In this document: positions 1 to 48,407 of the stretch, in pieces
How the letters are laid out: every line of letters starts with the position of its first letter
Position numbering within the stretch: the first letter of the stretch is position 1
Assembly: GCF_964204645.1 (NCBI RefSeq)
Contig: NC_134032.1
Coordinates: 8,048,275-8,112,274, forward strand
Direction: 5' to 3'
Length of the DNA stretch: 64,000 nucleotides
Source of the DNA: Tubulanus polymorphus
Taxonomy: Eukaryota; Animalia; Nemertea
Notes under the pieces: generated by a model
Told to the model about the DNA's origin: nothing
The model's input: only the letters and a program-made list of their open reading frames with translations
Database searches by the model: none
Translations under genes and position numbers: made by a program

Positions 1-364
1 TTTGATTCCAAAGTTTGGGACCCTTTACGTTCCGTGAAAATGAATTGATGCATTTAACTCAAAAAGATCGGCGAACGTGCAAAGCAGAAGGTTGTGGGAA
101 TGACAATACACAAACTGCCCAACAAGAAGATTGTTTTTATACCATGGAATTTTAAGATCCGAGTGGATTTGAATAACGGGCCTGTGTGTTCTAGGTACGT
201 AGTAACTTATAGTGATGATTCTTATGACTCTTTTTTGATGTTTGAATAATTTCCCTAGAGCAGAGTCGGAGTTGTTGCCCCAAAATTGTCTTCGTTTTCA
301 AGGCTTGTATGATAGAAATATCTAGATCGGAAGTTTGGAATTCATGTAATGTAATTCATGTAAT

Positions 365-454
365 GTAGGTCGGCAATTTGAAACCGAACCCACTCACTTC
401 ATTAAAGAATACCCTCCACGAACGAACTATATTGACCTATTCTGGAGTTGAACC
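365..454 (-). mobile_element. Terminal fragment of the foldback element family at 36166-37040
   Basis: taggtcggcaatt..gaaaccgaacccactcacttcattaaagaa...ctatattgacctattctggagttgaacc is the reverse complement of 36166-36255. Confidence 0.75.
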
Positions 455-688
455 AGTCACACCATCTGGTGGGAGAGCGGGTTGTGCAGACTCACAGTGA
501 AATCAATTGGTTTTGACCTCGGTCTTTTTCCAGGTTTAAGTAATTACCTATGCTCAATAATGAACCAGCTTTGATTAGAAATTTACATGAAATATCAAAT
601 CATACTCAATTATCATCCTAACATAAATCAAAAAGTGTCAAACCTAACTCGAAACTGCGAAGCAGATCTCGTTGAATAATTGCCTTAC

Positions 689-3600
689 CTTTGTACGGAT
701 CGGATTTCTGGAAGGTGACGAACGCTACAGCTGTGTCGGTATTACATACAGACGCCTTGACGGCGGCTCCGTTCACTCCCGGTAAACGTCGACCGCTACG
801 AATCAGAAAATAATGAATAGAAATATACACGAATGGATCGAAAAGGTTATAATACAACCTTTTTATAACCTAAATATATTATATAATATAACCTAAATAT
901 TATCTAGGTCAGAAATCTAGACGCAATTATAAAGATAAACCGAAATTGCAAAATTATCGAAAAGTCGTGCCCTCGGAGTCAAATCTTAACCATATTTCAC
1001 AGCCAGGTTCGCGTGAATTTATTTTGATTGTAGAAATCAGGTTTGGTTTTTGAAATCATTTTTACTATAGAAATCGACTATTGGATACGTAGAGTTCAAT
1101 CAATTATATATCAAAATATGTATTTAAAATATATATCATTTTTACCTCAGAACTTTTTTATTTTTGGCTGAATTTATAGTTGAATTTCTTCGCGTTATGT
1201 AGAGTTGAAGTTAATGAAAATGAATTAGTTTAATATCGAATGTACGTGAAATTGACTTTTTTACTATAGAGTTAGATAAACTGAAAAACAACATGTTTTT
1301 GCTTTGCAGTTTTAAATTGATCGGAAACGAAGTAAATTTGACTAGAGTGGAAAAAACTATGAAAATGAACTGATTTTCTAATTCTTAGAACTGTGGAACT
1401 GAGCCATATCTAAGAAAATATCAAATCATATATCACCTATTTTAACCGCAATAATCATATCAATTATCAATTGAAATTGAAATGATTAACTGATTCTGAT
1501 ACCTGATTAGTAGAACTAGGTCAGATCCCGTGTACTTGTTGACTATGGATTGTCTGTAGGTCCGTAGCTGGGCGAGCACCCCGTGTCTGCCTGACCCCTC
1601 GTCTCCGGTCTCTTCTTCCGAGTAGTCGATATAGTCGTTTCTGGTCCACATTTCAAAGCCGACTTCGGTAACGTTCATATCCACATCGCCCGCGTACTGA
1701 ATATATTAAGAAATATATTTTGAAAATGTTTCTATTATTGGTGGCTGATTAGGGACATGGCGCATTATCTTTTTTTGTAGCCGATTTAGGAGGAACAGAA
1801 TTATACATCTCATAATGCAATAGTTTTTACGCCGTGTAGAATCGACGTAAGGACAATGAAAAAGGTTTCATCGATTTTGCGTTATTTATGGTTCTAATAT
1901 TGTAGTTTTGACGCAACGTGGAAAAACAATTCGATGGTTTTACGGCGATATAAAAACCATGTATGATTCAATGATATTGCCTAAAGTGATGGAAAAGGCT
2001 TTTTTCATTATTTTTACGTTGATTTAACGTGTTATAATAACCATCGCGAAAGCAATAATGATAATGCATAAAACCGATGAAGTGTTTTCATTGCTTTTAC
2101 GTGGATTTCAAAAGAGGCGTAAAACAACAATGCGTATTGTGAGGATGTAAATCCTTTTTTAGATCGGCTACAAAAAAATTGCTCGACATCCTATTAGCTA
2201 GTGTGTTTCTCCCAGGATGTTCCGAATCAGGCGCTATACACATGACTTATGATTATGAAAATACCTTGTTCATACGACTGACGACATCGGTCAAAAAATT
2301 TCTCGCTTGGTTTACATCGTAATTAAACGCGTACGACTGAAAAAGAAATATCATTGGCAGCTCAAACTATAACAAATTCATGCAGTATATATCTGAGTCA
2401 ATTTGTGAACGATTTTGAATTTTCCTAATGGGGAAGAATAAGAATTCGTCTAAATAGAGGGCACGTTCACATGTAAACTCATTTGTTACATCAAAACGAT
2501 ATGTTCAAAAGCGCATTTGTCTGATCATTAAACATCATTTGAAGTACATGTGACGCATATGTTATATTTTCATCTTTAGGTAGAATCAAGTAAAATCGTT
2601 GGCCCGACCGAGAAACCATTGGATATTAAAAATGATTTACGTTTGCATATTTCCTTTCAATTCAAAACGAACTGATTCGATGTCATGATCTGATGAATCA
2701 TTTTTCATCACGAACAATTTCTACTTACGCATTCTTTGTCGCAAATCACGTAGATTTCGACGTTTCGCTTGGAGGTGGATCTTTTAATCCGTTTTTGCTG
2801 AAATACGGAAGAAACTATACTCTGCATTTCAGGATCTAGTTTCACAACTCAACCCACGGTTAGGCCACGCAAAGAAATACCCTTGTTTCTCCTCAGCCCC
2901 CTTTTTGGAAAAGTGACGAGGACGGCAGATTTTTATTTTCAAATATCATTTTAGAAATAAAAAGCCATATTCAAAAATTCCAAAAGTGTCGAGGGCGACT
3001 ATTTTCTTATTTCTTTAGATGGGGAAATTTAGGTGATAATGACCTTGAATCAGGATGGAAAGAACTTCGTTACCGAAATACTCACCTGCCACAGTATCAA
3101 TTGGGTAATAACCATTAAGAAAAACATAAAAAGTGTGATCAGGTTGTTTATCAGGACGCGTGCGGGAGTGTTTTACTTTTTTTAAATGAAGTAAAACAGA
3201 TTTCTGCAGCGGGATGAGCAGTCTTATTTTCATTTTTAGCTGACGAACTTTTTTTGACGCGCGCGGAAAATAAAACCGATGAGAAACAAGCATTTTTTTC
3301 GTGGCCTAAAATATTTGAGAAAATGAACTTATTTCGACTGCAGAGTTAACACTAGGCCCACAACGGTGAAACCGATACCAACCTTTGATAAATTCGTTAA
3401 TATATAATTATTATGATCATTTATACCTAGTGAAGTCATAGATTGGAATGAAAATTATATTTTTCGACATTGCCCGTTGAGCTAGAAATTTACTTACATT
3501 TAATCCTGGGAAGCGAAAAATATGAAATGATTCAAACGTTTTATTAATCAAGCAAAACCAAAAATCTTCAAAATGCTTCCTAAATGTATTTTGGACTGAC

Positions 3601-4879
3601 GCTTATTATAGAAAAGGTTTGATTTTATATGCGAAATGATGAAAGTCTAAGAAGTTTCAAATGTTTACATTGTATCAAAGCTCATTGATACTGATTTTTT
3701 GAAAAGCAAATCATAACGAAACGATTCATAATAAAACTTATCGTGCTGGAAACTGTAAACAAATGGTTTCATGATGTAGTGAGTTTTGCTTTAGAATTTG
3801 AATTACTTACGTCGAGCTGAAGCCTGAAGCGAGGCAACTGCTAAAACCAGAGTCACCAAAACCCATAAACGCCCTGAAAACGAATAGATTAATTCTGTAT
3901 AACATAGAAATTGATATACAGGCATAGACGTTCCTAAACCGGATTTAAGATTGCAAAAACTCATTTCAAGATGTCAAACCAGGAATGTGCAAATGGTGAT
4001 CTTTGAAAAAAGGCATTTGAAACAAGTTTCACGTACGGTTGGGAGTGAGAGCTCAAAGTGAAATTCATTTTCGTTTAAATGTTACATTATAAGACGTAGT
4101 TATTATGTAAGAAGAAGAATGTGGCACAGCAATGGGGCTACACCGAGAGACTGACCAAGTAGGCCGTATGATCCAGGGGCCAGTTGCACAGTCGTGGCTC
4201 AAGTCCAAAAGCGGTCTTCAATCTTTAGACCGGTCTTACGTTAGTTGTTAGTTTGGCTATAGAACTAAGTTGGACTTAACCTGGTCTTAAGTCTAAGCCA
4301 TGACTATGCAACCGGCCTCAGAAGATTGCAAACCACATTCATCTCACCCACCACGCCTCGCACACACGTATCAAATTGACGAATGGAAATAGAAAATGTA
4401 TAAAATCTTAGACATTTTATGATTATGTTATATTGTATAGTCCGGAAATAAGTCAATTTGAGTGGAAATAAGTCAATTCTTAATCACATCAACCCATATT
4501 TGACATTTTTACTGACGCTTCTGGAGGAACTGGATCCCGATTGAAATTCCGCGTGAAATTGTAAATCGATTAGTTAAAACTGAGAATCTTTGGCACGAAA
4601 GATCGAAATCGTTTTTGTTCAACCCGCTAAGCGCCACGCAGGGCATCATAAGTTCGATGTTTCCTTTTCCCAATGGGGTTCGAGACCAGGGAAGAACCTT
4701 CGACCAAGAAACTCTGTCGCCACCAGGGATTGAACCCATAAACCCTCGATTGACGAGACCAGCGACCGGCGGCTTAACCCACACGGCCACTGCGCCTCTC
4801 AAATCGTTGATTGGACGAACATTTAGAGTCGAATATAAGAAAGACTAAAACGTTCGATATACGTACCCGTGTTCACCAT
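689..4879 (-). CDS. Secreted reprolysin (M12B/ADAM-like) metalloprotease, gene 1; 5' part only, continues beyond window start
   Basis: Phase-consistent GT-AG exons 4867-4879, 3811-3873, 3498-3505, 2729-2797, 2265-2336, 1503-1696, 689-795 give MVNTGRLWVLVTLVLAVASLQASARRLNQKRIKR|STSKRNVEIYVICDKECSYAFNYD...GFEMWTRND...DLVLLISGRRLPGVNGAAVKASVCN: signal peptide, furin site and N-half of a reprolysin domain. Intron positions match gene 2. HEXXH exon not found in the window. Confidence 0.85.
2860..3309. mobile_element. Non-autonomous TIR element (MITE) in an intron of gene 1
   Basis: Inverted termini TTAGGCCACG(C/A)AAA ... TTTTTCGTGGCCTAA; no coding capacity. Confidence 0.55.
4177..4318. mobile_element. 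PIF/Harbinger-like MITE (related copies near 38530-38632, 39272-39430, 40288-40400, 47545-47685)
   Basis: TIR GGGCCAGTTGCA...TGCAACCGGCCT flanked by 3-bp CAG duplication; largely palindromic interior. Confidence 0.65.
4614..4800 (-). mobile_element. tRNA-derived SINE, apparently full length
   Basis: Minus strand begins GAGAGGCGCAGTGGCCGTGTGG (A box) with GGTTCAATCCC (B box); 8-bp TSD AAATCGTT at 4606-4613 and 4801-4808. A degenerate relative ends near 46920. Confidence 0.75.
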
Positions 4880-24688: not shown

Positions 24689-27600
24689 CGCCGTGCTTAT
24701 ATCGTATTCCTTCATGTTGAGAATCGCTAAAGTCGACGGAGTAGCCTGGAAATACGACTGGCTCATGTATTACGCTCATCGCTTCTGGAGGTGAAAAAAA
24801 ACTTTCATAGATTATCATATTCTCTGATTTGATTTCGATCGTATATTACGAATTTGAAGATATCATCAATAATGAGTCTTACTCTTGATTGATCATTTAT
24901 GAATTGGATTTCATAACGAATAATGATGCTTTTCGGCAATGCAATATAATTCTTCTTATATAATAATGGATGAGTTTTGATTAGTGAATTGATATCTTGC
25001 TTCATTGGATGTAATGGCGGCGACATTTAACTCGCACGTACGCAGAGAACGCTCCATATTCAAACGGAATTTTATATGCTAACGTTTGCTGTTTAAGTCT
25101 GGAATATCTTGGAGAAGATCGATTACAGTTTTGCACACAAGTGAAGGTAGTTTACGCTTGAACCTGATCGTTAAACTACAGATATTTGACTTAACGAAAA
25201 TTCACGTATACGTTTGAAATTTTGTTGAAATTTTGCTATAGTCGGGCAGTACAAACAAACAGTGAATGATCGAAAAATCGTCACGCATGAAGTGACACCC
25301 GAGTTGAATTGAAGGAACGAACGAACTTGGCATTTGCCAGTATGACTGGAGGGAACAAAGAGCAAAGTAAAAACGATAAACATTGTAAGCACAACCAACA
25401 AAATCAGAATAAAATATCGTAAGAGGGAAAGCGTGAAAGGTCCACCGGATCTGACTCGTCCGCTGCAGCAACGCCCGTCCGAAAATTACCAAAAGTGAAC
25501 GAACAATCGATCGAAAGTGACAGCGAGTTTGAGGATTCCGATATCGAAAAAGTGACACTTACAACCGTGATAACAGAGATACGTAGCCTGAAAAATCACT
25601 CGAGACAAAGATAGAATCAAAATTTGATTCCCTAAAAACTGAAATCGATAGCCTTAAAAGTGAGGTTGAAAATCTAAATTCACTTAGCGATAAAATCAAC
25701 GATGTCGAGGAAAAACTGCAGAGCGAATTTACGATAAAGATTAGTGACCTAGAACAGAAATTCAGCGCGGACTTGAAAATTCTTAAAGAGAATGCCAACC
25801 CCGACCGCTTGAAACTAGATGCGTTAGAAAGGCGCATCATCGATCAAGAAGCCAGGTCACGCCGCATTAACCTCGTGTTCCATGGTGTGCCAGAAGTGGA
25901 AAGTGGACCGGAGGATTGCGAAAAAACCGTTAAAAACTCTCTAAAAAATGCGTTCGGGATACCCGTGAGTAAATTAGATAATATGATCTTCGAAAGGGTA
26001 CACAGAAACCAAAACCGGTCCTACCCACGTACGATAACTGTGCGATTTCACGATTATAACGATCGCCAGTTCATCTACATGTCGAGATTCAACCCTGAAA
26101 ACAAAAGTGGAATACGAATCTCAGAGGATTACCCGGTCGAAATACGAAAAATTAGGAAACAGCTGTTTGAGAGAATGAACAATATAAAAGACAGCGACCC
26201 GAACGCCAGCGTACGGGTGTCGTATGATAAACTGATCCACAATGGCGATGTGTTTCAAGTGATCGCGGGCGAAATCAAATTATTAAGAAAAGGAGAACCG
26301 CCTATCCGACGACAGTTTAACCACGGAGCAACGGAGGCAAGTCTGGTCGCAACGACAATCAGCGCACACAACAAGCACCGTGGCAACCGATAAACCTACG
26401 CAATGATACTGCCGGCAAAGAAAAGACAGCTGGCGATAACCTATTATCTTTCGGCGAGCCACAAATCCCGTACGATCGGCGCGCAGATACCCCCCACAAA
26501 TGTTGACCTACTCTCTACCAACGCTCCAATCCCCCCGCAGGCTGCCTCGACGCTGCAGCCAAGCCCTGTCAGGAGAGATGGAGAGCGCGCGTCTGCTACT
26601 GGAAATACCGGCATAGGAACCCGCTGAGCCAAGAAACAATACAAACATAGGCGATAATGACACTTCGTTCTCTATCCTGAATCTTAATGTCTGCGGTTTG
26701 CGATCGAGAACTATTGTACCGGAATTTGGTGATCTATTAAAACAATTCGAGGTAATAACTTTGGTTGAAACCAAGGTCGACAATGCCGATGATTTATGGA
26801 TTGAAAACTATTTTAATGATCTGGGTTATAGAATTCTTTGCAACAATAGACGAAGTTTGTCAGTTAGAAAATCAGGGGGTATAGCTATTGCCATCAGATA
26901 TGACATATCTCAATATGTTATTCGATCGTTCCACCTGAGCAATCTTGCGCAGTGGATTGAGTTTGATAAAGTTTTGTGGAACACCGATAAGCATGTTCTA
27001 TTCGCTGGTATATACTTGCCACCCGAAACTAGTGTTTACGGTGGAAGTCATTTGTTTGACGATTTAAACAGCGAGATAGCGCATGTTTTAAAAGATGAAA
27101 ATTATCTCTTCATTAGTGGAGATTTTAATTCATATACAAAAACCTTCCCAGAATTTATAACCCATGATGAATTCATAGCAAATGAATTGGGCCTGGACTT
27201 CATTTTTAATGACGCAGTGGTAGCTTTGGCTGAACTTGATAGGCTTGGAATCCGTAATAGATGTAATGAAGATAGCGGGATGAATAACTATGGGTACAGG
27301 TTGATTGAACTTTGTAAATTGTGTAATATATTTATTGTGAATGGCCGAGTTGGAGTTGACAGAAATATCGGGAAGTGCACGTGCTTCAAGGGAAACACAA
27401 AACACCTTGTGGACTATTTTATCAGTTCATCGAGCATTTTCAAAAACATTACAGATTTCCAAGTACTCGAATTCGAAAAGCTTTTTTCTGACGTTCACTC
27501 ACCGATATCTTGCCAAATTAGAAGGGGAAATTTACCAAAACCAGAACAACGGGACCACCCGACAGTTGTAGATCAAAATGCTAGGATTAAGTGGAATAAA

Positions 27601-30600
27601 CAAAGAGTTGAAACCTATAAAATTGAGCTCAAAAGACGTAATGAGGACCAATTAATTGAACTCAATAGAGAACTAGATGATAATATCAATGCTGGTGATG
27701 CGAGCAATATTTTAACTGACATAATGATCAGTACTGCAGTTTCAATAATGGGGTTACAAAATGTAAAAAGTAAGAAAACGGTCAGAGTAATAATAAGGGG
27801 TTTAGCCCAAGATTAAAAGAGCCGAGGAGAAACTATCGTCAGATGAAACGGAGATATAGGAGGTATAAAACAAACCTAAATAGAACAGAAATGAACAAAG
27901 CTTTTAGGCGATATAAAAATGCTATCCGAACTCAGAGAAATATAAAAGTGAAAAATATGAATAACACAAACAAAGCTGCAGGAATAGATCGCATAACTAA
28001 CGAAATTTTAAAAGCCTCACAAGAGTTCATATTACCAACACTTGTTTTACTTTTTAACACTGTCTTAGATACCGGTGTTATCCCCGACAGTTGGACTATT
28101 GGTACTATCAAGCCAATCTATAAGGGAAAAGGCGATACCAAAGACCCAGACAACTATCGAGGGATCACCCTCCTTAGCTGTCTGGGGAAACTTTTTACTA
28201 GCCTGATAAATGATCGTCTGACGGAATACCTAGAAATCAATGATCTTTTACTGAAAAACCAGGCAGGCTTCAGAAAGGAGCATTCTATACTAGACCATAT
28301 CTTCACTTTGAATTCACTGATTGAATTATTTATAGCTAACAATAAGAAGTTCTTTTGTATCTTCATCGATTATCGAAAGGCATTCGATTCAATATGGCGT
28401 AAAGCACTCTGGCATAAAATGATAAATACTGGTATAACTGGAAAAATATTACGAGTAATTTACAATATTTATCAGATGCAAAGTCATGTATTCAAGTAAA
28501 CGGCGTCAATTCGGAGTACTTTGAGAGTTTTAAAGGATTGAGGCAAGGTGAGAACCTCTCCCCTATTCTGTTTTCAATATATCTGAATGATATGGAACCG
28601 TTTCTGATTGAAAGTCAGTGTGATGGTATTAGGTTCTTTCGTGACCAAGAAAGCTTAGATGTTTATTTCCGACTCCTATTATTGTTATATGCAGATGATG
28701 CCGTTATACTAGCAGAATCTGCCCAAAGCCTACAATATACAATCGATAAAGTCTTTGAGTATTGTCAGATGTGGAAACTCGACATCAACTTGGATAAAAC
28801 TAAGGCAATAATCTTTCAAAAGAGGAAATGTCGAAATCCTCCAGAATTTTTCATAAATGGGAGTAAAATAGAATTAGTCTCCAGTTTCAGATACTTAGGT
28901 ATCATTTTCTACTATAATGGAAACCTATCGACATGTATTGAGTCTATAGCTTCACATGCTAATAAAGCTATGTTTTTTGTTTTGAAAAAGGTAACAGAAT
29001 ACTCCTTGAGTGTTGACTTAGCTTTGCAACTCTTCGACAGTATGGTAACCCCAGTTTTAACATTCGGTTGCGAAATTTGGGGATTTCTTAATCTGAACTT
29101 GCTTGAGAAAGTTCAAGTGACCTTTTTCAAATATCTATTAAAACTAAAAAGGTCGACACCGACCTTCTTTGTCTATGGAGAACTAGGACGTTTCCCCTTT
29201 GAAGTAAATGCTTAAATTTTGGAGCAAATTGTTGAATAATCATAGTAAGCTTTCTTCTTTTATGTACAAGGTTTTGTACCAACAGTCCTTATTTAATAAT
29301 AATACGAGTAGATGGTTAAAATGTATCAAGAATACATTGGAATCTAACGGACTTGGTGATTTATGGTACAACCAAAATACACCGGACCTGGAGCTCTTCT
29401 CTTTAACAGTGCGGACACGATTAACTGATCAATTCACCCAAACTTGGCACAGCATAGTAAATGAATCAAGCATCGCCACGTACTATAAATTTTTTTTAAA
29501 CCAATGGCGTATCGAAAATTACCTTGTCAAACTGCCAACGGATCTTAGAAAGATACAACCGTACCCCCAGGGAAGAGCGAATATGTAATCTATGTAATAT
29601 GAGAGTCATTGGGGATGAGTACCACTTTGTTCTAGAATGCCCTTTCCTTCAGAATCTTCGCACCCGGTTCATTAAACCTGTAACCTGTCTCGCTTTAAAC
29701 AGCAAGAATCAAAGTTTCTCTAACTCATATTAAATATGTACTGTTCAATGCCCACCTTAAGCTATTGTTGATTGATAAGTATTCATGTATTCTTCTCATT
29801 TAAACCGTGTTTGTATGAATTCTGTAAACTGCATGTATACGTGTACAATGTATGAACCTGTTTTTTGTGCTCTGTGCAAATGTAAATTTTGTGGAGCAAT
29901 AATCTAATTGTAATTGTAATTCAGCCGCTCTTATTGACCATGGGCGTGCCCAGGATTTTTCAAAGGTAGGGAAAAATTTACAAGGAGCCAAAGTCCACTA
30001 TTCCACACACTGCCGTTATATAGAGCTTCTCATATGAAAAAAAAACATGACTGCTAAATCCCGGGGCTAGATCTTTGTGTACGAAATTTGGAGCAAAGTG
30101 CCCCCAGTGACGCCGATGATGTGTGTGTGTGATTATCAAATGATATTTTTCTAGATTGACACCCACGTATATGCTAGTACTCGCGGTATCGACGAATTTA
30201 AGTCGCTATTTTGGCGATGGGCCGGTATATCCTGATTTTTGGGGTTTTGACCCTAACTGCAGAGATTCGTGGAAGGCGCATCTGATGTACACGAGCAATT
30301 TCTTAGCTAAGGTTATCAATGTGGTAAATAGTCAGTCGTAGAACTATAAGCAAACGGGGACGATGACTTCTCGGAAAACCGCTAGGCAGCGCTAGGAATC
30401 TTGTGATTTGCCCTCAACGTTAGCGACAAACAACATGGGAATCGGGCAAACTGAGCTTATTTTACCATCTAGATGGGCTTCGGATAAATACACATTTTCG
30501 TTACTACTACTCGTAGAGGAGCAGTGTTGGCCCGGTGTTGAATATAAGTAAAACGAGACAGATAGTACTTAAGGTTTTGATTTGTTTATTCGAAGTATGT

Positions 30601-38030: not shown

Positions 38031-39881
38031 ACTTACCTAAACATTTCATTTCCAAGGTTGCCTGTTCCCCCATTCAACACGCCGGAACTCAGAGCATTAT
38101 TAGCAGGCTGAAGTGTCTTTTCCGCTCAACCCACTGAGCACCAACGTAGAGCTTACCGGATAGAGAATTCTAGAAAGATTCCCGAAAAGATACGTTGAAA
38201 AAATCGCTGAAGAGAGAATAATTGATATGTTTAAATGTCATTGGTTATGCAGCCGACGTATTGCCCATGGGATTGCGGGGTCCATTCAAAAACTCTTTTC
38301 CTGCGACACTTTTTCTATTGTACGTAAAACAAGTTTCTGCGACTTCATTCTTTTCAGAACGATTCCAGTTCCATAGGAGTTAAATCAGAATCTAACTCTT
38401 AAGTAGGCCTACGAATACGAATTAGGTGATTTTTACGTGAACATAATCAAATTTGACGAAGAAATAATGAACGATCCTGGTGACAGATATGTGTAACCGG
38501 GAACTAGGTGTCAGACAGGTTATAGACATGGGCCCAGTTCCATAGTTGTTAGAGTTAACTCTGAGTGAAAGTTAGTTCATTTTCAATGAGTTTACTCTGA
38601 GTCAAATTTAACTCACAAGTGTGGAACTGGACCATGAGGACTCACAAACTAACCCCTAGTGACATGTTTGAGAAACACAAATTAATTATTGATGAGGTTT
38701 GTCTAGAGCTAAGAATACATATTGAGTAACGTGAAATGTTGATTACGACATTAAACATTACATAGTTATACTTAATCTTTTGAGCCCTGTTTCGGTGGGA
38801 GGCCTTTTATTTTCCAAGATGACATGATATATACCCCACACGTGTTCAGGACTTTCATGGACCATGGACTGAAGTATCATATTTCGATATTAAATGTATG
38901 ACTTAACAAATGTATATCAGGGTGACAGATGGACTAGTTAACCTTTTGAACAAAATGGCCTCGAACGGCTGAAATGAAAAAACGGGCTTGACATTGATTT
39001 TCTGAATGCAAGTAACGGAAAATCGTAATTGAAATAGTGATAACACAGATAACTTGAAATAACATTTTCTTTTGTAACACAAACCAATAAAATGTAGAAT
39101 GTTATTTGAAAACTGTGGTCACAGATGCTGCAGAGACATGAGAATATAGTAATAATTAAGACCGTTTTTATTGTCACAGTGCTCGAATTATCAATAGGTT
39201 TACTTACGTCAAATAAAACCAACTGTTACACAACCGTGGAACGGTGCAGTTAAGTAAACGCTTGAACTTTGGGACTGGTTCCGATCCAGAGAACGAGTTT
39301 TACCCAAGCAACCTGCACCTGATCCAGAGTCAATTCAGACGTATACAACTAAATTCAAAATCAAATTCAATCTACACAAATGTGGAACTCAACCAAATTA
39401 AGCCCACACGCCAGCCAGTGGAACTTGGTCCAGAGACACATTTCATCCTATTGGATGGGTCCATTATAGAATTGAATCCAAATAACGCAAAGTACGCGGA
39501 ACAGAATAAAGAGTAAGATCAATAAAACACGACTGTAAAACCTGGTCTGGTACTTTTTTAGCAAAAGATACACTTGAATTTTCGAGGGACAAAAGTCGTG
39601 AAATTAATTTCGGCACAAATGACTATCATTTGAATTAAGCGTCGAAAACATTTCCAACGTAATAAACGGAAACTGGGGATCACAAACGACACCCAAGGCT
39701 AAAATAAGCCAATCTGCAAAATTACTGCGGCGATTCACTTATCGTCACCTGGCACCAAACCCTCGCATTTACACAAATGAAATCATTTTAATTAGTTTTC
39801 ACTAATCGCATTTGAGGTTAGAGTTATTAATTTTGCTCTCCGGAGAGAGCAGAGCATTCCGGTGTTTTTTGTCCGGGACGG

Positions 39882-39889
39882 TATATAAA
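39882..39889 (+). promoter_or_regulatory. Candidate TATA box of metalloprotease gene 2
   Basis: TATATAAA about 55 bp upstream of ATG 39939. Confidence 0.5.
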
Positions 39890-39938
39890 TATTTGCAAAG
39901 CACGTAGAGCAAGTCACTTTAGGACCTCATCCACACTC

Positions 39939-42900
39939 ATGGGTAAGTGACATTTCGTTTGAAATTTAGATTTCTATGCAAGGTTCTTACACTTATCTGT
40001 TATATTACATATAATCATCAATATCTGTTAATCTAAGTACGTTGCAATTTCGTAGATTTTTACAATTTACCTTTGATATTCAATTCTTTCTTCTTATTTC
40101 CCGTAAATTTCTCACCTCACGTCTTTTCAAGTCGAGCATTTTTCAGGAAAAGATTTTTGAACATTTCTTAAAACGGCCTCGCGATATTTAAGCTAGCAAT
40201 TCGTGTCCTAAAGATTTCAATCGCTTTCGAAAATCTTTGGGCGGCAGGGTGCACGAAATGCCTTCTAGGGATATGAAGACGATCAAGGACCGGTTTCACT
40301 AATTGTGAATTTGAGTTAACTCTAAGTTAAATTTAGTTCTTTTACACTCATAAATTTTAACCCAAGTCAAATCTCAACTCACAACATGGAAGTGGGCCCT
40401 GGTACAACGGGGACACACTGGTGTATAGAATGGTATAAATTTTCAATTTGACCATAAAACGGGATAGGGTCTGTTCTCATAAAGTAGGCCTACAGGCTGT
40501 GGTCGCAAATAACACTAATATGTTTGAATTATGTTGTTTTAGAGTTGTTACGACTAGCGACAGTCTGCGTACTGTATCTTGCCGCGGCCGTTAAAGGTAT
40601 GTGCCTTTTCAAAATTGAACCTTATTTCGGTTAAGCTAAAATAATCTAATTTCGATACATTCAATATAAATCACCTATTGTCATCGCTGATTAGAAAATC
40701 TTTTTTTTCTATTCAAGCTGTGCCGTACAATCCGTCAAATTTCGACGAATTAACAGACATTCGACAGCGACGTTCCTTAAAAGGTAGGTTCAAAATTGCC
40801 TTCATATCTGTAGCATATCGGGCGTCAACTTTAAACACTACAGTCGTAGTACCGCAGATCCAGATTCATATCCCAATTTGAGATTTTGAGAACTCTTATT
40901 ATATCTACAGGAACTGAGCCATTCAATCCGTCTAATTTTGATGAACTAGAAGAAGGACCGGAGCAGAAACGTAAACGGCGGTCATTAGGTAAAAACTGCT
41001 AATCATTGAAATGATATCCTAGAAAACCCAAGGGCAGTTGCTTATTTGAAAGAGCCAATCAAACATCTGAAGCAAAGCTTAAGCTAATTTCAGTTCTATA
41101 ACCGATCTAACAACTTGAAAACAATCTAAACCAGATGCATCGAAACTGGGGGATTAGCTTACAAATTGCGCCAGGTCTAAACTTTGGTATCTGGGAGCAA
41201 GCGTAACGAACAAAGTCTAGCCATGAGCAGTCACGGAACCTAATGAAACTGTCATTGAGTAAACAACGTCGTTTTTTGTTCTATCATTGCAGACGGTGCC
41301 AGTCACGCGACCAACTACCGATCTCAGGGACGACGATGTAAGTTAGTGACCTTGACCTGACCCCGTTACGTCAAATGGCACGAGGTTACTGCACACCGCG
41401 TGCCGCAACTTGCTGCTCATTTTACGTAGTCATAATTTACAACTTTGAATGAAGTGAATCTGAATGCTGATATCCATCATCAAACCATAAAAAGTTTCGC
41501 TTGGTGTTTGGTGTGTTTCAATTGATAATTTGTTTACTTCAGATTAAGGCAAATTAATTCGATTTTGATTGAAACATAAAAACTATGTAGATGAAATAAA
41601 AGCGCAGAAAGTGGAGTCAATATTAGCGCAACCGCGTATATATACTCGCTTTCCACAGCAACGCTGCCGGTATCCCGTCCTATAACAATTTATGTATGAT
41701 TTTTACTTTCTATTCCGGTATTTCAGCGGCAAGCGATAAGAAGATCGAAATATTTTTCGTCTGTGACCAAGCTTGCGTGAGTTACTATTCAATTTCGTAT
41801 AAAACCTACGTACAGAACCAGCAACTATTTTCCCATAATGGTGCCAATAACATTATTTTATGCACTGAAAGAAATGGCACTGGGCCCTAAGAAATTGCGC
41901 CACGTGGGGAGACCCTCAATTCACAGTAACCATGCAATATATATCCCAGTAAATTTGGTTACGTCATGCTACGCCATCAATTGGAGGCTGGATTTTCAGA
42001 GCAACTAATCTGTCCTTAGAAAAATTGGGAGACACGCAGCAGTATAAATTAATGATGACTACTTTTCAGGCATTCGCATTCGGATACGAAAAATCGAAAA
42101 TCGAGAGTTTCATCGAAGGCGTTCGCGAAAGAATGGATTCGGTAAGTCTTAGATTTATTATTTTAGAATATATCCAAAAACAGATGGGTTTACAGCTCTG
42201 TGCTGGGAGTGGGCATCAGCTAGGGCAGATGCACTAAGTCCTCTCACTTGATGCTGTGGGAGACAACACAGCTGCACAGAAAGCTGAGTGACTATATCGC
42301 CACACAGGGGCTCGCAATGAGATCCAATCGCGGTTGCGTAGCGAATGAGTGACTAGAACAGATTAATGGGTTTTGGAGAACTTTCCGCACAACTGCAAAG
42401 GAAGTTGAGTAACTAGGGACAGACACGGTCCTACGTGAAATCACAACAATTAGTTTTTTTTTCAGGTTATATCTGCAGCTACAGACCAAAAATTACGCGT
42501 AACCTCCGTAGGCAAACATGTTTGGTTGAAGAACGATTTAATCGATTACACAGTTATAAAGGACAAAAGTATCGGAGAAAAAATGACGGCAGTACTCACA
42601 GAAATCGCCAACTATAGAACAAGTATTGCGAACAAAAGAATCAATTCGGACATCCTCATCGTGTTAAGGTAAAGCGATCATTATGAGAAGTACTTATAGA
42701 TGAGAGCTTATCTGATACGAATGAGCTATAAAATGATTGAATGTTGTTCATGTGCATATATCCAAATGAGCTATTTAAATATTTAAGGAATGTTGAGGCT
42801 TATAACTCGCATGGAATTTGGATAAGCAAATGAGCTAACTTTCCTATGGGCATTGGTTAATTTTGTGTTGCTACAGCCACTCACGTGGAGTTTATTTGAT

Positions 42901-45900
42901 TTTATGGCAGCCTGTATTCTTTGAATATGTAAATGAGCTGTAACAGTATACGATATTTGCTTTTTCAGCGGTAAACATGATCGCGATCTGAAGGGTACCG
43001 GTATGGACAACTCAGTGTGCAACAGTGAATACGCAACTGCTTGGGTAACTTTCAATGCCGGCGACAGCGATATAATGAAAAGTGAGTAGCAAAACATCTT
43101 GAGTTTTATTCCGATTTGCGATCGATTTAGTAATAAGGCGAGTGGTTTTAGTGCCATATCGTCCTAACCAATAACCCCAATGGCAGCGAGGAAGGGGGCT
43201 ATTTAACTCTGTGGGTCTCGAACTTGCTACAGTGGTGAATGGCAAATGATGTGCACGGTGCCAAGACAAATTCACAAAACAATAGAGAACCTGAAAAGAA
43301 TTGAAATTTGTTTTTTTGGCCTAAAGGTTATTTTCAGCGGTTGCTGATATTAAGTGTTTACGGTGTGCTGATAACAACTCAAATCTTTTTTCATCAGCTT
43401 AAAAAAGGCGTTAGCTAGAATCAGCTTTTCTGTACACATGTGCACTGTTGGGGGTTTCTTCAGAGATTAAACATGCTTGCTTTTGTCTCACAACAAATCT
43501 CGAAAAAAGATTGTGACGTTCATGATCTCTTGTATATAGGAAACAAGGCTGCCCACACGGCTTTACACGAAATGGGACACGCTTTAGGACTCCCGCACAC
43601 ATCTTCAGGTACGGTATATCAAATATCTCTCGTTATAGCATTTGGACATAATATGGATGATATTGATTTGATTTTAAACTTAAAAGGTCTTTAAAAGTGA
43701 ATCAAATACAGTGTTGAAGCAACATCCACCGCGTTTTAAGCAATTTCGGCCATTTTCAATAGTTGTTTTTTTTAGGTTGTAGTTGTGATAATCCCAATAT
43801 CGGTTGTATCATGGATTCGCATCAGTAAGTCTTCAGCGATTGACTTTCCTAATTGATGTTTGGAGAAAAGGACGAAAGGCACTATGAAATTGTAAAAATT
43901 AATTCAAATTGAACCCCGTACTATACCAGAATAATTACTGGCGATACGTGTTCAATTCATGCGTGCCACAATTAGACTCCTCTATCGCGACAATAGCCGA
44001 CATCCTACTGCAAACTTGGGATCCTCCTCACTCCAGTACACACTAGCGCAGCTGGTAGATCATTGCTTGCCACAAGTGGAACCCTCGATTGTCACATTAG
44101 ACGATAACTTCCTGCTGCATACCAGCACACCCAGGAAGAAAGCCACTAAATATTTGGATGGATATATGAAAGCTGTGGGTACTGGAGTGTGTAATGGGTA
44201 GTGTAGTGTGATCTGTGTGCATTTTGGTGGCCAGCACACAGATCAAATTGTTCATTGGGGTTTAGTCCAGGACTCGCGAGATTTTCAACAACACGGAAGT
44301 AACGTGTAATAAATGATGACTTGAATTGCATGACTACCTACCACCCCTCATTATTGTTGGAAAACTAAACGTTCCGCACTGACTAAAAATTAGTAATAAT
44401 AATCAATAACATTTTAGAAATGGCCAGAATTTTAACTTAGGTTCTATCTTATTTTTATTTTACAATTGCGATTGGTATAATTTTTTTTTAAACGGCCGTT
44501 AAGGCTTCATATTTCGTCTGCAATTCACTGCAAATAGTTACGCAACTACGCACATTTCAGTGTTTTTGGCAGATGTACACTCAGTCGGCACCGTTCGTGA
44601 CTAGCTTCACTGCGGAATTATCATTAATTAACATCGCCATATCACATCATCAACTTATATTGTGCCTTAAAACCCTAACAGCCGAAATAATTGAAATGCA
44701 CACACGATTTCTATCATTGAAAATTGAGAGAGTGGCCGTGTTTGTTATCTGCTGCTTCCCGTAAATCCCGCGGGGTGGCGCCACCGCGCGGAGTGGGGCC
44801 GATACGTCTAGTAGATCCTCAATAGGAAGTCTCAATTGCTACAACAGCGGCGTAGCCACTGCCAAATACTGAATAATTAGACTTATATGTAGGCCTACTT
44901 GTAACCCGTGTACAATACATTTGGTCGATATTGGAACAAACATGTTCACATAAGCAAAACGTTCGACATTGATTTCAATCGTATCATCGACATGTTCATC
45001 GTCATTTATTTATCGTCAGGTCCTATTCATCAGTGAACAGCCCCAAATACAGTACGTGCATTGCCGATAAATTGAAAGCGAACACTTTGGGATGCCTATC
45101 TATAGATGCTGAAAGTTTGGTACGTATACGAGCTTTATTCGGTATTTCAATATAGGGCTTGCAACCAGGATCTTTTCCACGTGACATCGCCAAACACACA
45201 ATGAGTGATTTACATGACAGACCCTTGGAGTTTGTAAATTCCTAATCATCGTTTGTAGATTGTTGATATGTATAGCGAGTGCCCAGCATCGTTCGAAACG
45301 AACTATGACGTCCCGTGCTAGACCTCTATACCCGATATGATTAACCAGCGCAATTTACATATTGGCCCATTGCACGTGACATCATATTTGCTTTGCCCGT
45401 CAGTGTTTGATACTAGTCTTGCTATACGTAACAACATACGAGTATACTTGTTACGTATGGCAAGTAAGACAATATGGCCGTTTACAAATTCCTGGGATCA
45501 GTCGTATAAATCATTTGACCGCAAAATGGCTTCGAGTCCAAGGCTCATTTCGATAGTGCGTTTCCAGAAGATGAATTATTTCGTATTTATTCGATTGCTT
45601 GGTTTGGAATTTTTGCCAATTCCGCCATCTTTGTGGCGCTAGAATCTCCTGCCGAAAGGAAAATTCGTCGCCCAGAAGGGCACAATTAAAAAGGTTTTGG
45701 ACTGGATGAGGTCATATTGACGGTCACAATGCAACCCTGTTATGTGTCATGAAAAAGTTTTGAGGGCAAGCTGAAGTGCTATTTTATACAGAGTAGCTGC
45801 GGCGATGGTGAAGTTAACGATGGCGAGGAATGTGACTGTGGAGCCTTCGTAAGTTTTCCATCCCATCTATATGACAAAACACCATTGTGAAACTTGGTAA

Positions 45901-48407
45901 CTGAAAGTTGGTAACTCCTCTGATGAATTTATTATTTCAGCAATGCGACTGCTGTGACCCGAAGACGTGCAAGGTAAGTTTGAAAGCAGTAATCATTCTA
46001 TTTGGAGAACTGTGTACATCCATTTTTACCCACAAGTGGACTGTTTTGTTTTCTAATTTAAGTTTAGAAGCTCATCCGAATTTTGTCCTTCCAACGAGTG
46101 TAAAAAATGCAGTGGCTCGGATCAAGATGTACGTATAGTTCTATGATAAACCGAACCCAATTTGAATTCAAAACTTGTCCATAAAACCATAGCAGATTGC
46201 GCAGGCAAATAGAATATATAGGATACGTATGTTCTATAACCAATCGAACAAAGTAGAACCAGTCATCCCCAACATTTTGGGCATTTTTAACTTCAACCAA
46301 GGGAGGCTAACTCAACTAGAATTGAACTGGGTTGACCCTGTAGTCAAAATTAAACGCGAAAGAGCCTACTGGTTCAACCCAATGGTTAACGCCGAATCCG
46401 GAATCGAATCCATCGGAATTGTAGAGGGAATTAAAATCAAAACTCCAGGTCTATAGAAACCAGGGTTAAAGGGTTAAACTGATATATAAAACCAGCAGCT
46501 GGGATAAACTAGTAACTGATCTACAAAACAAATCTACCATAGAGCCATCAATTTTATATCTATTTTTTTTCCAATTGCCTGGAACAGTGCACGGGAAGTA
46601 GCCTAAAGGACTTCATCGCATGTCACGACGGTAAAGGATATTGTTTTGATAGCCATTGTCAGAGTGCTGATCGTTCATGTCAAAGATTCTTTGGACCAAA
46701 CAGTAAGTGCCAATCACGAATTTGTATCGTTATGTTACCTACCTCTGTGGTTATGCGTGCTGTGAACTGCGAATGACTGGCTGATTCGACCAGGATTCAA
46801 ACACATGGATCCTGGGTTGACGGAAGTAAGGTGAAGTGGCTGACATCTACCATAAGGATTCAAACATGACACCTGAATTGAAGGGCTAATGGCTGAGGTC
46901 GGTCGGCCACTGTGCCTCTCGCTGCAATTATACGCATCGTGCCTAATATAGATAACTGGCAAGAAGAATTCAAATTTGCTATAATTTTAGGCAGTGGCGA
47001 CCTGACGGCCATGAAGTACAACGATGACTACCATTACAGCCAGCATACCGGGGGCGGTTACTTATTGTGGGATCCACAACTTGCAAAATGGAGCAATTAC
47101 GGTGATTTCAAGGCCGACGAGGGTAATGGGTACGTTATGAGAGCCGTTACCTATCTAGAGTTAAAGCATTGAGAATAAAATTAAAACTTTCGCAACTGAC
47201 AATCCGGGTCGAATTGAGTCCAAGCAGTCGAGTGTCGAATGGATACAGTTGCTATGGTCTTCGGGAGTCTTATTAATCAACGTAAATTAAAACCATATTT
47301 CTAGGTACTGCGGCATCCTGGAATGTGTGACGATTTCCAAGGCGAAAGTTCGGGATCAAAACGGCAACGAAATGGACTCAAAAACTTTTAAACTCTCATG
47401 GAATCCTACAGTTCGGTAAAAAGCTTCTGCAAACGCAAGAATTAACAGTTTTAGGGGTATACCTTCGTTGGAGTCCGTAAAAACTTTTCATAAACTAACA
47501 TCAACTTACCGCTGGAGTACTGTAGTTTACGTTAGTTAACTCCAGGGCCCGGTTTCATAGACTGAGCATCAAAGTTATCCCTAGGGATAAATCCTCAATC
47601 TGGCTGACAACCACCATAGTAACAATGAGAAACCATGGTTATAACTGACAAATTTCAAAATGTTCCATATCTATGAAACCCGGGTGCACCCTCGACTTTT
47701 CCGACTTGAAATTTCTCTTCCAAACAGAACAAATGGCTGCTCAGTCAATACAGGCTAGAGACGCGCGCAAGTAGTAACCCGTATTGATTTCCATCCGCAC
47801 CCGTTCCCAAAAAGGTAGATTCTGCCCTCGTAAAAATTGGCTCGGGTTACGATTCCAAAATAATACGGGACGTGTATACGTCCGTAAGTTTCGCGCGATG
47901 GTGGGATGGCCTCTTGGCAGTTTTTGGATCCCTAGACGCTCACTGATAGGTTGAGAATATTGTCTATGTCGACCTTCTTTTTTCAATTTATGGTAGAATT
48001 GCCTATGTCAAGACAAAAGAAGCCCACTGGGGTAGTTACAAGTACGAACAATTCGAAGTGGTCACCGCATCGCGTGGTACGCCTTGTTCAATTGACGGTA
48101 AAAAGGGGGTAAGTAGTTATGATTGTTCGGTAGTCTGGTGGTCAGGGTACTTCCTCTATTGCTGCAGTAGTTCGTACGCCGTTGCGCACTTGCATACCTG
48201 ACGAATTCTCACTTACCACAGTATTGATGCAGTCAAAACGGGATTCAACAGTCACTTTACAACTGTCTGTCACTTTTAACTCAGCGAAACCGCGGCAAAT
48301 TTTGAAAATCCTTTTTTTTTCAGTATTGCGACAATTCAGAAATAACCCACGACAAATGGAATTGGAACGATTTCCGAACAACGAAATGCATACCGCTGCC
48401 GACTTAA
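39939..48407 (+). CDS. Secreted ADAM-type metalloprotease-disintegrin-cysteine-rich protein, gene 2 (~539 aa, 20 exons, no TM)
   Basis: Exons 39939-39942, 40543-40596, 40718-40783, 40911-40988, 41293-41337, 41727-41776, 42070-42141, 42466-42668, 42969-43081, 43540-43608, 43776-43824, 45020-45119, 45792-45848, 45941-45973, 46063-46128, 46588-46702, 46991-47129, 47305-47415, 47997-48108, 48324-48407 sum to 1620 nt in frame. Signal peptide, HEMGHALGLPH, CSC..GCIM Met-turn, CGDGEVNDGEECDCG, GYCFDSHC, YCGILEC, RGTPC. Confidence 0.9.

Follow-up and report, generated by a model that had tools for sequence, protein, structure and literature searches.

A 20-exon gene in the window, i.e. the whole 64-kb stretch of DNA analyzed here, is predicted to encode a secreted, soluble metalloprotease of the ADAM/adamalysin family (M12B) that resembles P-III snake venom metalloproteinases in its layout and carries an unusual N-terminal extension. 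On balance, and with somewhat better than even confidence, we interpret this extension as a lineage-specific propeptide that arose by exon duplication, is removed by proprotein convertases and sits on a soluble ADAM that has lost the canonical pro-domain. The predicted propeptide comprises ~60 residues, is both acidic and basic as well as cysteine-free, and is encoded by three symmetric phase-1 exons. ADAMs and snake venom metalloproteinases are thought to need a large pro-domain for folding and latency.

The gene model was traced downstream exon by exon and covers positions 39939-48407 of the forward strand. It comprises 1620 nt (539 codons and a stop), is stop-free, keeps consistent phases throughout and has AG/GT sites at all introns. 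The window, at ~38% G+C, is DNA of a eukaryote, and its introns are of the GT..AG type. The genome scanned for related sequences is a 268-Mb assembly of 77 contigs, in which the focal gene is located on contig C8. The features of the focal gene are as follows.

39882-39891, forward strand: TATA-like box, read off the sequence 57 nt 5' of the ATG, putative promoter element
39939-39942, forward strand: exon 1, the ATG and one further base, followed by a GTAAGT donor, phase 1
40543-40596, forward strand: exon 2, hydrophobic signal peptide, joined in phase to exon 1
40718-40783, forward strand: exon 3 (66 nt), pro-region module 1 with NPSNFDEL, then RQRR|S
40911-40988, forward strand: exon 4 (78 nt), pro-region module 2 with NPSNFDEL, then RKRR|S, tandem duplicate of exon 3
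41293-41337, forward strand: exon 5 (45 nt), pro-region module 3, with a terminal QGRR that marks the border to the catalytic domain
41727-41776, forward strand: exon 6, predicted mature N-terminus and first catalytic strand, 42% identical to the paralogue exon after RIKR
42070-42141, 42466-42668 and 42969-43081, forward strand: exons 7-9, main part of the catalytic domain, matching the paralogue colinearly in tblastx, phases checked
43540-43608 and 43776-43824, forward strand: exons 10-11, zinc site HEMGHALGLPH, then C-x-C and the CIM Met-turn
45020-45119, forward strand: exon 12, end of the catalytic domain, Y-S-x-C ... G-C-L, from phase-constrained enumeration, with the same layout as the paralogue exon
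45792-45848, 45941-45973 and 46063-46128, forward strand: exons 13-15, shortened disintegrin-like region, starting with CGDGE...EECDCG
46588-46702, 46991-47129, 47305-47415, 47997-48108 and 48324-48407, forward strand: exons 16-20, ADAM cysteine-rich region and C-terminus, stop codon at 48405-48407

Exon 2 contains no in-frame ATG, so that exon 1 is the sole way to provide its start codon. The mean Kyte-Doolittle hydropathy of exon 2 is 2.07 over 15 residues, compared with 0.9 or less in the C-terminal exons. Exons 3-6 are flanked by AG acceptors behind pyrimidine-rich tracts and by GT donors, and introns 1-5 are all in phase 1. The edges, phases and translations that the initial annotation had given for the three phase-1 mini-exons agree with the AG/GT sites and with the stop-free model, and its proposal that these exons, two of them duplicated, form the N-terminal pro-region of a secreted metalloprotease is supported. 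For exon 12, another candidate at 45259-45321 (forward strand) was rejected because it is out of phase with exon 11, has no usable donor and ends in TAG. The rejected segment is a decayed duplicate of exon 12, located 140 nt 3' of the true exon and retaining the Y-S-E-C ... C pattern; together with the exon 3/4 pair, it indicates at least two exon duplications in the history of the focal gene. High-copy repeats occupy positions 38394-38787 and 40955-41151 (Logan word depth of ~50,000 and ~740, respectively, with a baseline of ~30-37), and the second of these falls within the ADAM gene, where it sits in intron 4, which separates the duplicated exon 4 from exon 5. Elsewhere in the window, a broken non-LTR retrotransposon is found on the forward strand at 25773-29215, consisting of an endonuclease-like ORF (Exo_endo_phos below the cut-off) and two stop-split RVT_1 pieces of 52 bits each, and an intronless ORF of 476 codons on the reverse strand at 59596-61026 matches the rhodopsin-family 7tm_1 profile with 33.9 bits, over the cut-off.

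The enzyme had initially been described as an astacin (M12A), an assignment that did not survive analysis of the complete gene. The ADAM_CR profile (PF08516; cut-off 29.4 bits) scores 30.5 bits on exon 16 and 32.4 bits when the genome is scanned, whereas the Pfam Astacin profile reaches 14.7 bits against a cut-off of 22.5, and does so via the HExxH stretch alone; the astacin assignment was therefore rejected in favor of ADAM/adamalysin (M12B). The extended astacin motif HExxHxxGFxHExxRxDRD does not fit either, the third zinc His being followed by T-S-S-G and not by Glu. Exons 10-11 (43540-43824) encode an HExxHxxGxxH zinc site, then C-x-C and a Cys-Ile-Met Met-turn. In single-exon scans, Reprolysin_5 scores 19.7 bits on the focal exon (cut-off 27) and 25.7 bits on the corresponding exon of the paralogue described below. 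The sequences CGDGE...EECDCG and CC-D-x-x-T-C are present, single exons give no match to Pfam Disintegrin, and the region is much shorter than usual. Across exons 12-20, all of which were checked, no hydrophobic stretch follows the signal peptide, and no EGF-like, transmembrane or cytoplasmic parts were found; together with the stop codon of the paralogue, located one codon beyond the focal stop, this points to a soluble protein with the P-III-type layout.

With M12B enzymes, and especially with the soluble P-III snake-venom type, the predicted protein shares the zinc site, the C-x-C...CIM Met-turn, the CGDGE...EECDCG sequence and the ADAM cysteine-rich domain, as well as a convertase site immediately preceding the catalytic domain and the lack of a membrane anchor. 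Unlike ADAMs and P-III enzymes, it has neither Pep_M12B_propep nor a cysteine switch, its ~60-residue pro-region comes from three mini-exons, its disintegrin-like part is much shortened, and the third zinc His is followed by Thr instead of Asp. An orthologue search with exon 8 (phmmer against 1.84 billion representatives) returned one match, at an E-value of 2.7e-4, to a repetitive protein that was judged bacterial and spurious on reading its sequence. Exon-level PDB searches and an ESM Atlas look-up yielded nothing usable, exon 8 alone being without a PDB match.

The only close paralogue of the focal gene lies on the reverse strand, at the start of the window.

1-3964, reverse strand: 5' half of the paralogue, which runs past the window start to about C8:8042579 (G000:C8:8042579-8048274)
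~3877-3812, reverse strand: paralogue signal-peptide exon, ending in phase 1
~2798-2728, reverse strand: paralogue exon with RIKR and the start of the catalytic domain, beginning Pro-Lys-Arg-Ile-Lys-Arg-Ser

The paralogue and the focal model are connected by 13 colinear exon-level tblastx matches, with amino-acid identities of 31-65%. The start codon of the paralogue is ambiguous and could be provided by a 4-nt first exon, as in the focal gene, or by an in-frame ATG further up the open frame. In the 1-kb intron between its signal-peptide and RIKR exons, splice- and phase-constrained enumeration detected no plausible phase-1 mini-exon, and local alignment with the three modules, at the DNA and at the protein level, gave similarities no higher than those of shuffled controls. 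Conservation of the motif in paralogues had been proposed as a test of the initial interpretation, and the outcome goes against it: the only close paralogue shows no trace of the modules, and the motif is unique in the genome. The paralogue appears to pass straight from the signal peptide to RIKR and the catalytic domain, an arrangement that points to an ancestral layout of signal peptide, furin site and catalytic domain; the modules would then be either an acquisition of the focal gene or a feature of which the paralogue, having lost it, retains no trace. Given that the paralogue manages without them, the modules are not required for the enzyme as such.

In both gene models, that of the focal gene and that of its only close paralogue, the canonical ADAM pro-domain and the cysteine switch are absent. 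A six-frame whole-genome profile scan did not find Pep_M12B_propep (PF01562) on contig C8, and its seven matches in the genome are distributed over contigs C1, C2, C4 and C5. For one of them, the best ADAM_CR match follows 6 kb downstream, in the canonical arrangement, so the scan is able to detect canonical ADAMs exon by exon. The segment from the signal peptide to exon 6 encodes no Cys residue and no cysteine switch. Latency through an astacin-type aspartate switch, as first suggested, has lost its premise, the enzyme being an ADAM, and the FxGD motif is absent from exons 3-5.

The tandem duplication of exons 3 and 4 with retention of NPSNFDEL, by comparison, held up on closer analysis. Aligned in register, the two exons are 71% identical across 55 nt, and their NPSNFDEL cores (40729-40752 and 40925-40948) differ at 4 of 24 bases, all four differences being synonymous. 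Among the 72 single-base changes possible in the core, 13 are synonymous, and the chance of obtaining four synonymous changes out of four is ~0.001. The introns flanking the duplicates have diverged to near the identity of shuffled sequences, both on the 5' side (53.5% over 150 nt, compared with 46.7 +/- 2.1 for shuffled sequences) and on the 3' side (49.6% over 120 nt, compared with 47.1 +/- 2.5), which indicates that the duplication is old. The combination of synonymous-only divergence in the core with decayed introns implies that NPSNFDEL is held by selection on the protein. Judging from this substitution pattern, the motif is under purifying selection and hence has some function in the protein as long as the extension remains in place. 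Exon 5 weakly resembles exons 3 and 4, the likeness being confined to the first codons and the terminal Gln-(Gly)-Arg-Arg-Ser, and may be a worn, degenerate third copy of the module. Exons 3-5 would represent the growth of a pro-region through duplication of symmetric exons.

Degenerate DNA patterns (NPSNFDEL with one mismatch, PSNFDE exact) revealed no NPSNFDEL elsewhere in the genome beyond the two copies; the other pattern matches in the whole genome were few, no more numerous than those of a reversed-pattern control, and lacked exon context. Blank results of short-peptide protein searches of the genome carry little weight, since these searches recovered the query exon alone and missed even the sister exon. 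NPSNFDEL is absent from the literature searched, and the supplements searched of ribbon-worm toxin papers contain neither the motif nor the zinc-site or disintegrin strings of the focal enzyme.

The same exon architecture might be read differently, with exons 3-5 as cassette exons that are weakly used or unused, in which case the main mRNA may join the signal peptide to exon 6. Each module exon is a multiple of 3 nt with phase 1-1, such that any subset could be skipped in frame, and the paralogue has no such exons; however, the acceptors are good polypyrimidine/AG sites, the donors read GTAGGT, GTAAAA and GTAAGT, the three consecutive exons are open and in phase, and the synonymous-only divergence of the motif shows that it was translated and under selection. 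Among the sequencing runs searched, three contig sets read through the introns and are DNA-like, and one run that may be RNA yielded no sequence for this stretch. We consider the cassette or weak-use reading of these exons unlikely.

The three basic, convertase-type cleavage sites noted in the initial annotation are present at the ends of exons 3, 4 and 5 and, in the numbering of the model, read RQRR38|S, RKRR65|S and QGRR82|S, with Ser after each. Translated in six frames, the complete 64 kb contain three occurrences of R-x-[KR]-R-S-[LA], two of which are those in exons 3 and 4. The last basic site is located five residues upstream of the first conserved catalytic strand, and the paralogue has RIKR at the same junction. 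The recurrence of a basic site followed by Ser at every module end, as in RIKR|S, suggests that the module ends originated by repeated copying, with each module, of an ancestral junction between signal peptide and catalytic domain, which would survive as RIKR|S in the paralogue.

Sites 1 and 2 fit R-x-K/R-R, and site 3 has Arg at P1, P2 and P6. The classical furin rules, reportedly set out by Nakayama in 1997, call for Arg at P1 together with basic residues at two or more of the positions P2, P4 and P6; as Arg at P1, P2 and P6 satisfies them, the Gly at P3 of QGRR needs no special explanation. This Gly had been taken as part of a G-R-R amidation signal, but it is not conserved in the paralogue (RIKR), and QGRR with its P6 Arg also fits an ordinary furin-type junction. 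Proprotein convertases are encoded in the genome by at least six loci with the convertase P-domain, and loci for PHM/DBH-type monooxygenases are many, so that the genome provides the enzymes for cleavage and, in principle, those for amidation. Tandem arrays of exon matches to Cu2_monoox_C (PHM/DBH-type) at C3:23389407-23429139 (4 matches in 40 kb) and C4:1011716-1025674 (3 matches in 14 kb) suggest local gene expansions.

Sequential furin cuts, at an upstream site and at the boundary site, have been documented for the pro-domain of ADAM17 (PMC5159831), so that several sites in the pro-part of an ADAM are not per se the signature of a hormone precursor. As in the two-step furin activation of ADAM17 and ADAM10 (PMC5159831), the focal pro-part has more than one convertase site, the last of them at the catalytic boundary. 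In ADAM17 and ADAM10, however, the sites belong to an inhibitory pro-domain that is folded, measures ~190 residues and contains a cysteine switch, whereas the focal sites end short modules without a recognizable fold.

According to the preferred reading, that of a duplicated and convertase-removed propeptide, signal peptidase would cut near residue 17-20, after which furin-type convertases of the late secretory pathway would cut after Arg38, Arg65 and Arg82, and the last cut would free the mature N-terminus, five residues ahead of the first catalytic strand. While attached, NPSNFDEL might restrain the enzyme, maintain its solubility or direct it to secretory granules; a role in solubility or sorting is as possible as that of a cis-acting acidic switch. 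The released peptides would most likely be by-products.

A more specific alternative assigns the repeated acidic-hydrophobic motif the role of a sorting or condensation signal that guides the enzyme, in gland cells, to granules of the regulated secretory pathway and is clipped en route or at discharge. M12B proteinases, along with those of M12A, reportedly figure among the major components of mucus and proboscis transcriptomes in ribbon worms (PMC7460313), and the motif is selected though dispensable for the enzyme as such, being absent in the paralogue. Nevertheless, it matches no known sorting motif, and the neighbouring paralogue carries no such signal, and we regard a dedicated sorting signal as rather improbable.

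The remaining comparisons concern short prosegments and peptide precursors. The FxGD aspartate switch is a feature of astacin (M12A) zymogens, and fragilysin-3 has an aspartate switch on an adamalysin-like catalytic domain (PMC9848320). The focal protein resembles astacin zymogens and fragilysin-3 in its short N-terminal prosegment, of which an acidic side chain could in principle block the zinc; it differs in not being an astacin and in having no FxGD motif. With neuropeptide and peptide-hormone precursors it shares a signal peptide, repeated short peptides between basic sites and one Gly before a basic pair; unlike in these precursors, a 450-residue protease follows, the copies number only two, and the Gly is found at one site and is not conserved in the paralogue. 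Snake venom metalloproteinases have endogenous tripeptide inhibitors, acidic or pyroglutamyl, that are encoded as repeats in a separate precursor. These inhibitors come from another gene and are tripeptides, and the likeness would lie in the idea of small peptides stored together with an M12B enzyme.

A peptide-plus-protease polyprotein, in which the two NPSNFDEL peptides would inhibit the enzyme in trans or in cis by an Asp/Glu switch and a C-terminally amidated 14-residue peptide would have an activity of its own, is very improbable: the formal signals are all present (three basic sites, one with a preceding Gly), NPSNFDEL is under selection, convertase and PHM-like genes exist in the genome and an aspartate switch is known in fragilysin-3, the catalytic domain of which is adamalysin-like (PMC9848320), but the astacin premise is wrong and no FxGD motif is found, NPSNFDEL is found neither in the only paralogue nor elsewhere in the genome, the paralogue junction has no Gly, QGRR with its P6 Arg is accounted for as a plain furin junction, and a large enzyme domain is not normal in hormone precursors. 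Highly doubtful, too, is the broader proposal that a folded cysteine-switch pro-domain was replaced by a convertase-released array of acidic peptides, one of them amidated, that serve as stored inhibitors or as co-secreted peptides acting on prey.

The analysis, in which a convertase-removed propeptide built from duplicated exons is the preferred reading, describes two neighbouring, apparently intact genes for soluble ADAMs without the canonical pro-domain, one of which has a new, selected mini pro-region. The pair offers a natural test of how the adamalysin catalytic domain folds and is controlled without a cysteine switch, and the focal gene a clean case of pro-region evolution via duplication of symmetric exons. 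Should the peptides prove active, the production of a protease and that of a peptide toxin would possibly be linked in one precursor, and, if the reading as an array of released acidic peptides, one of them amidated, were true, the gene would be a genuine case of a peptide-plus-protease polyprotein in the toxin or mucus secretion of an animal.
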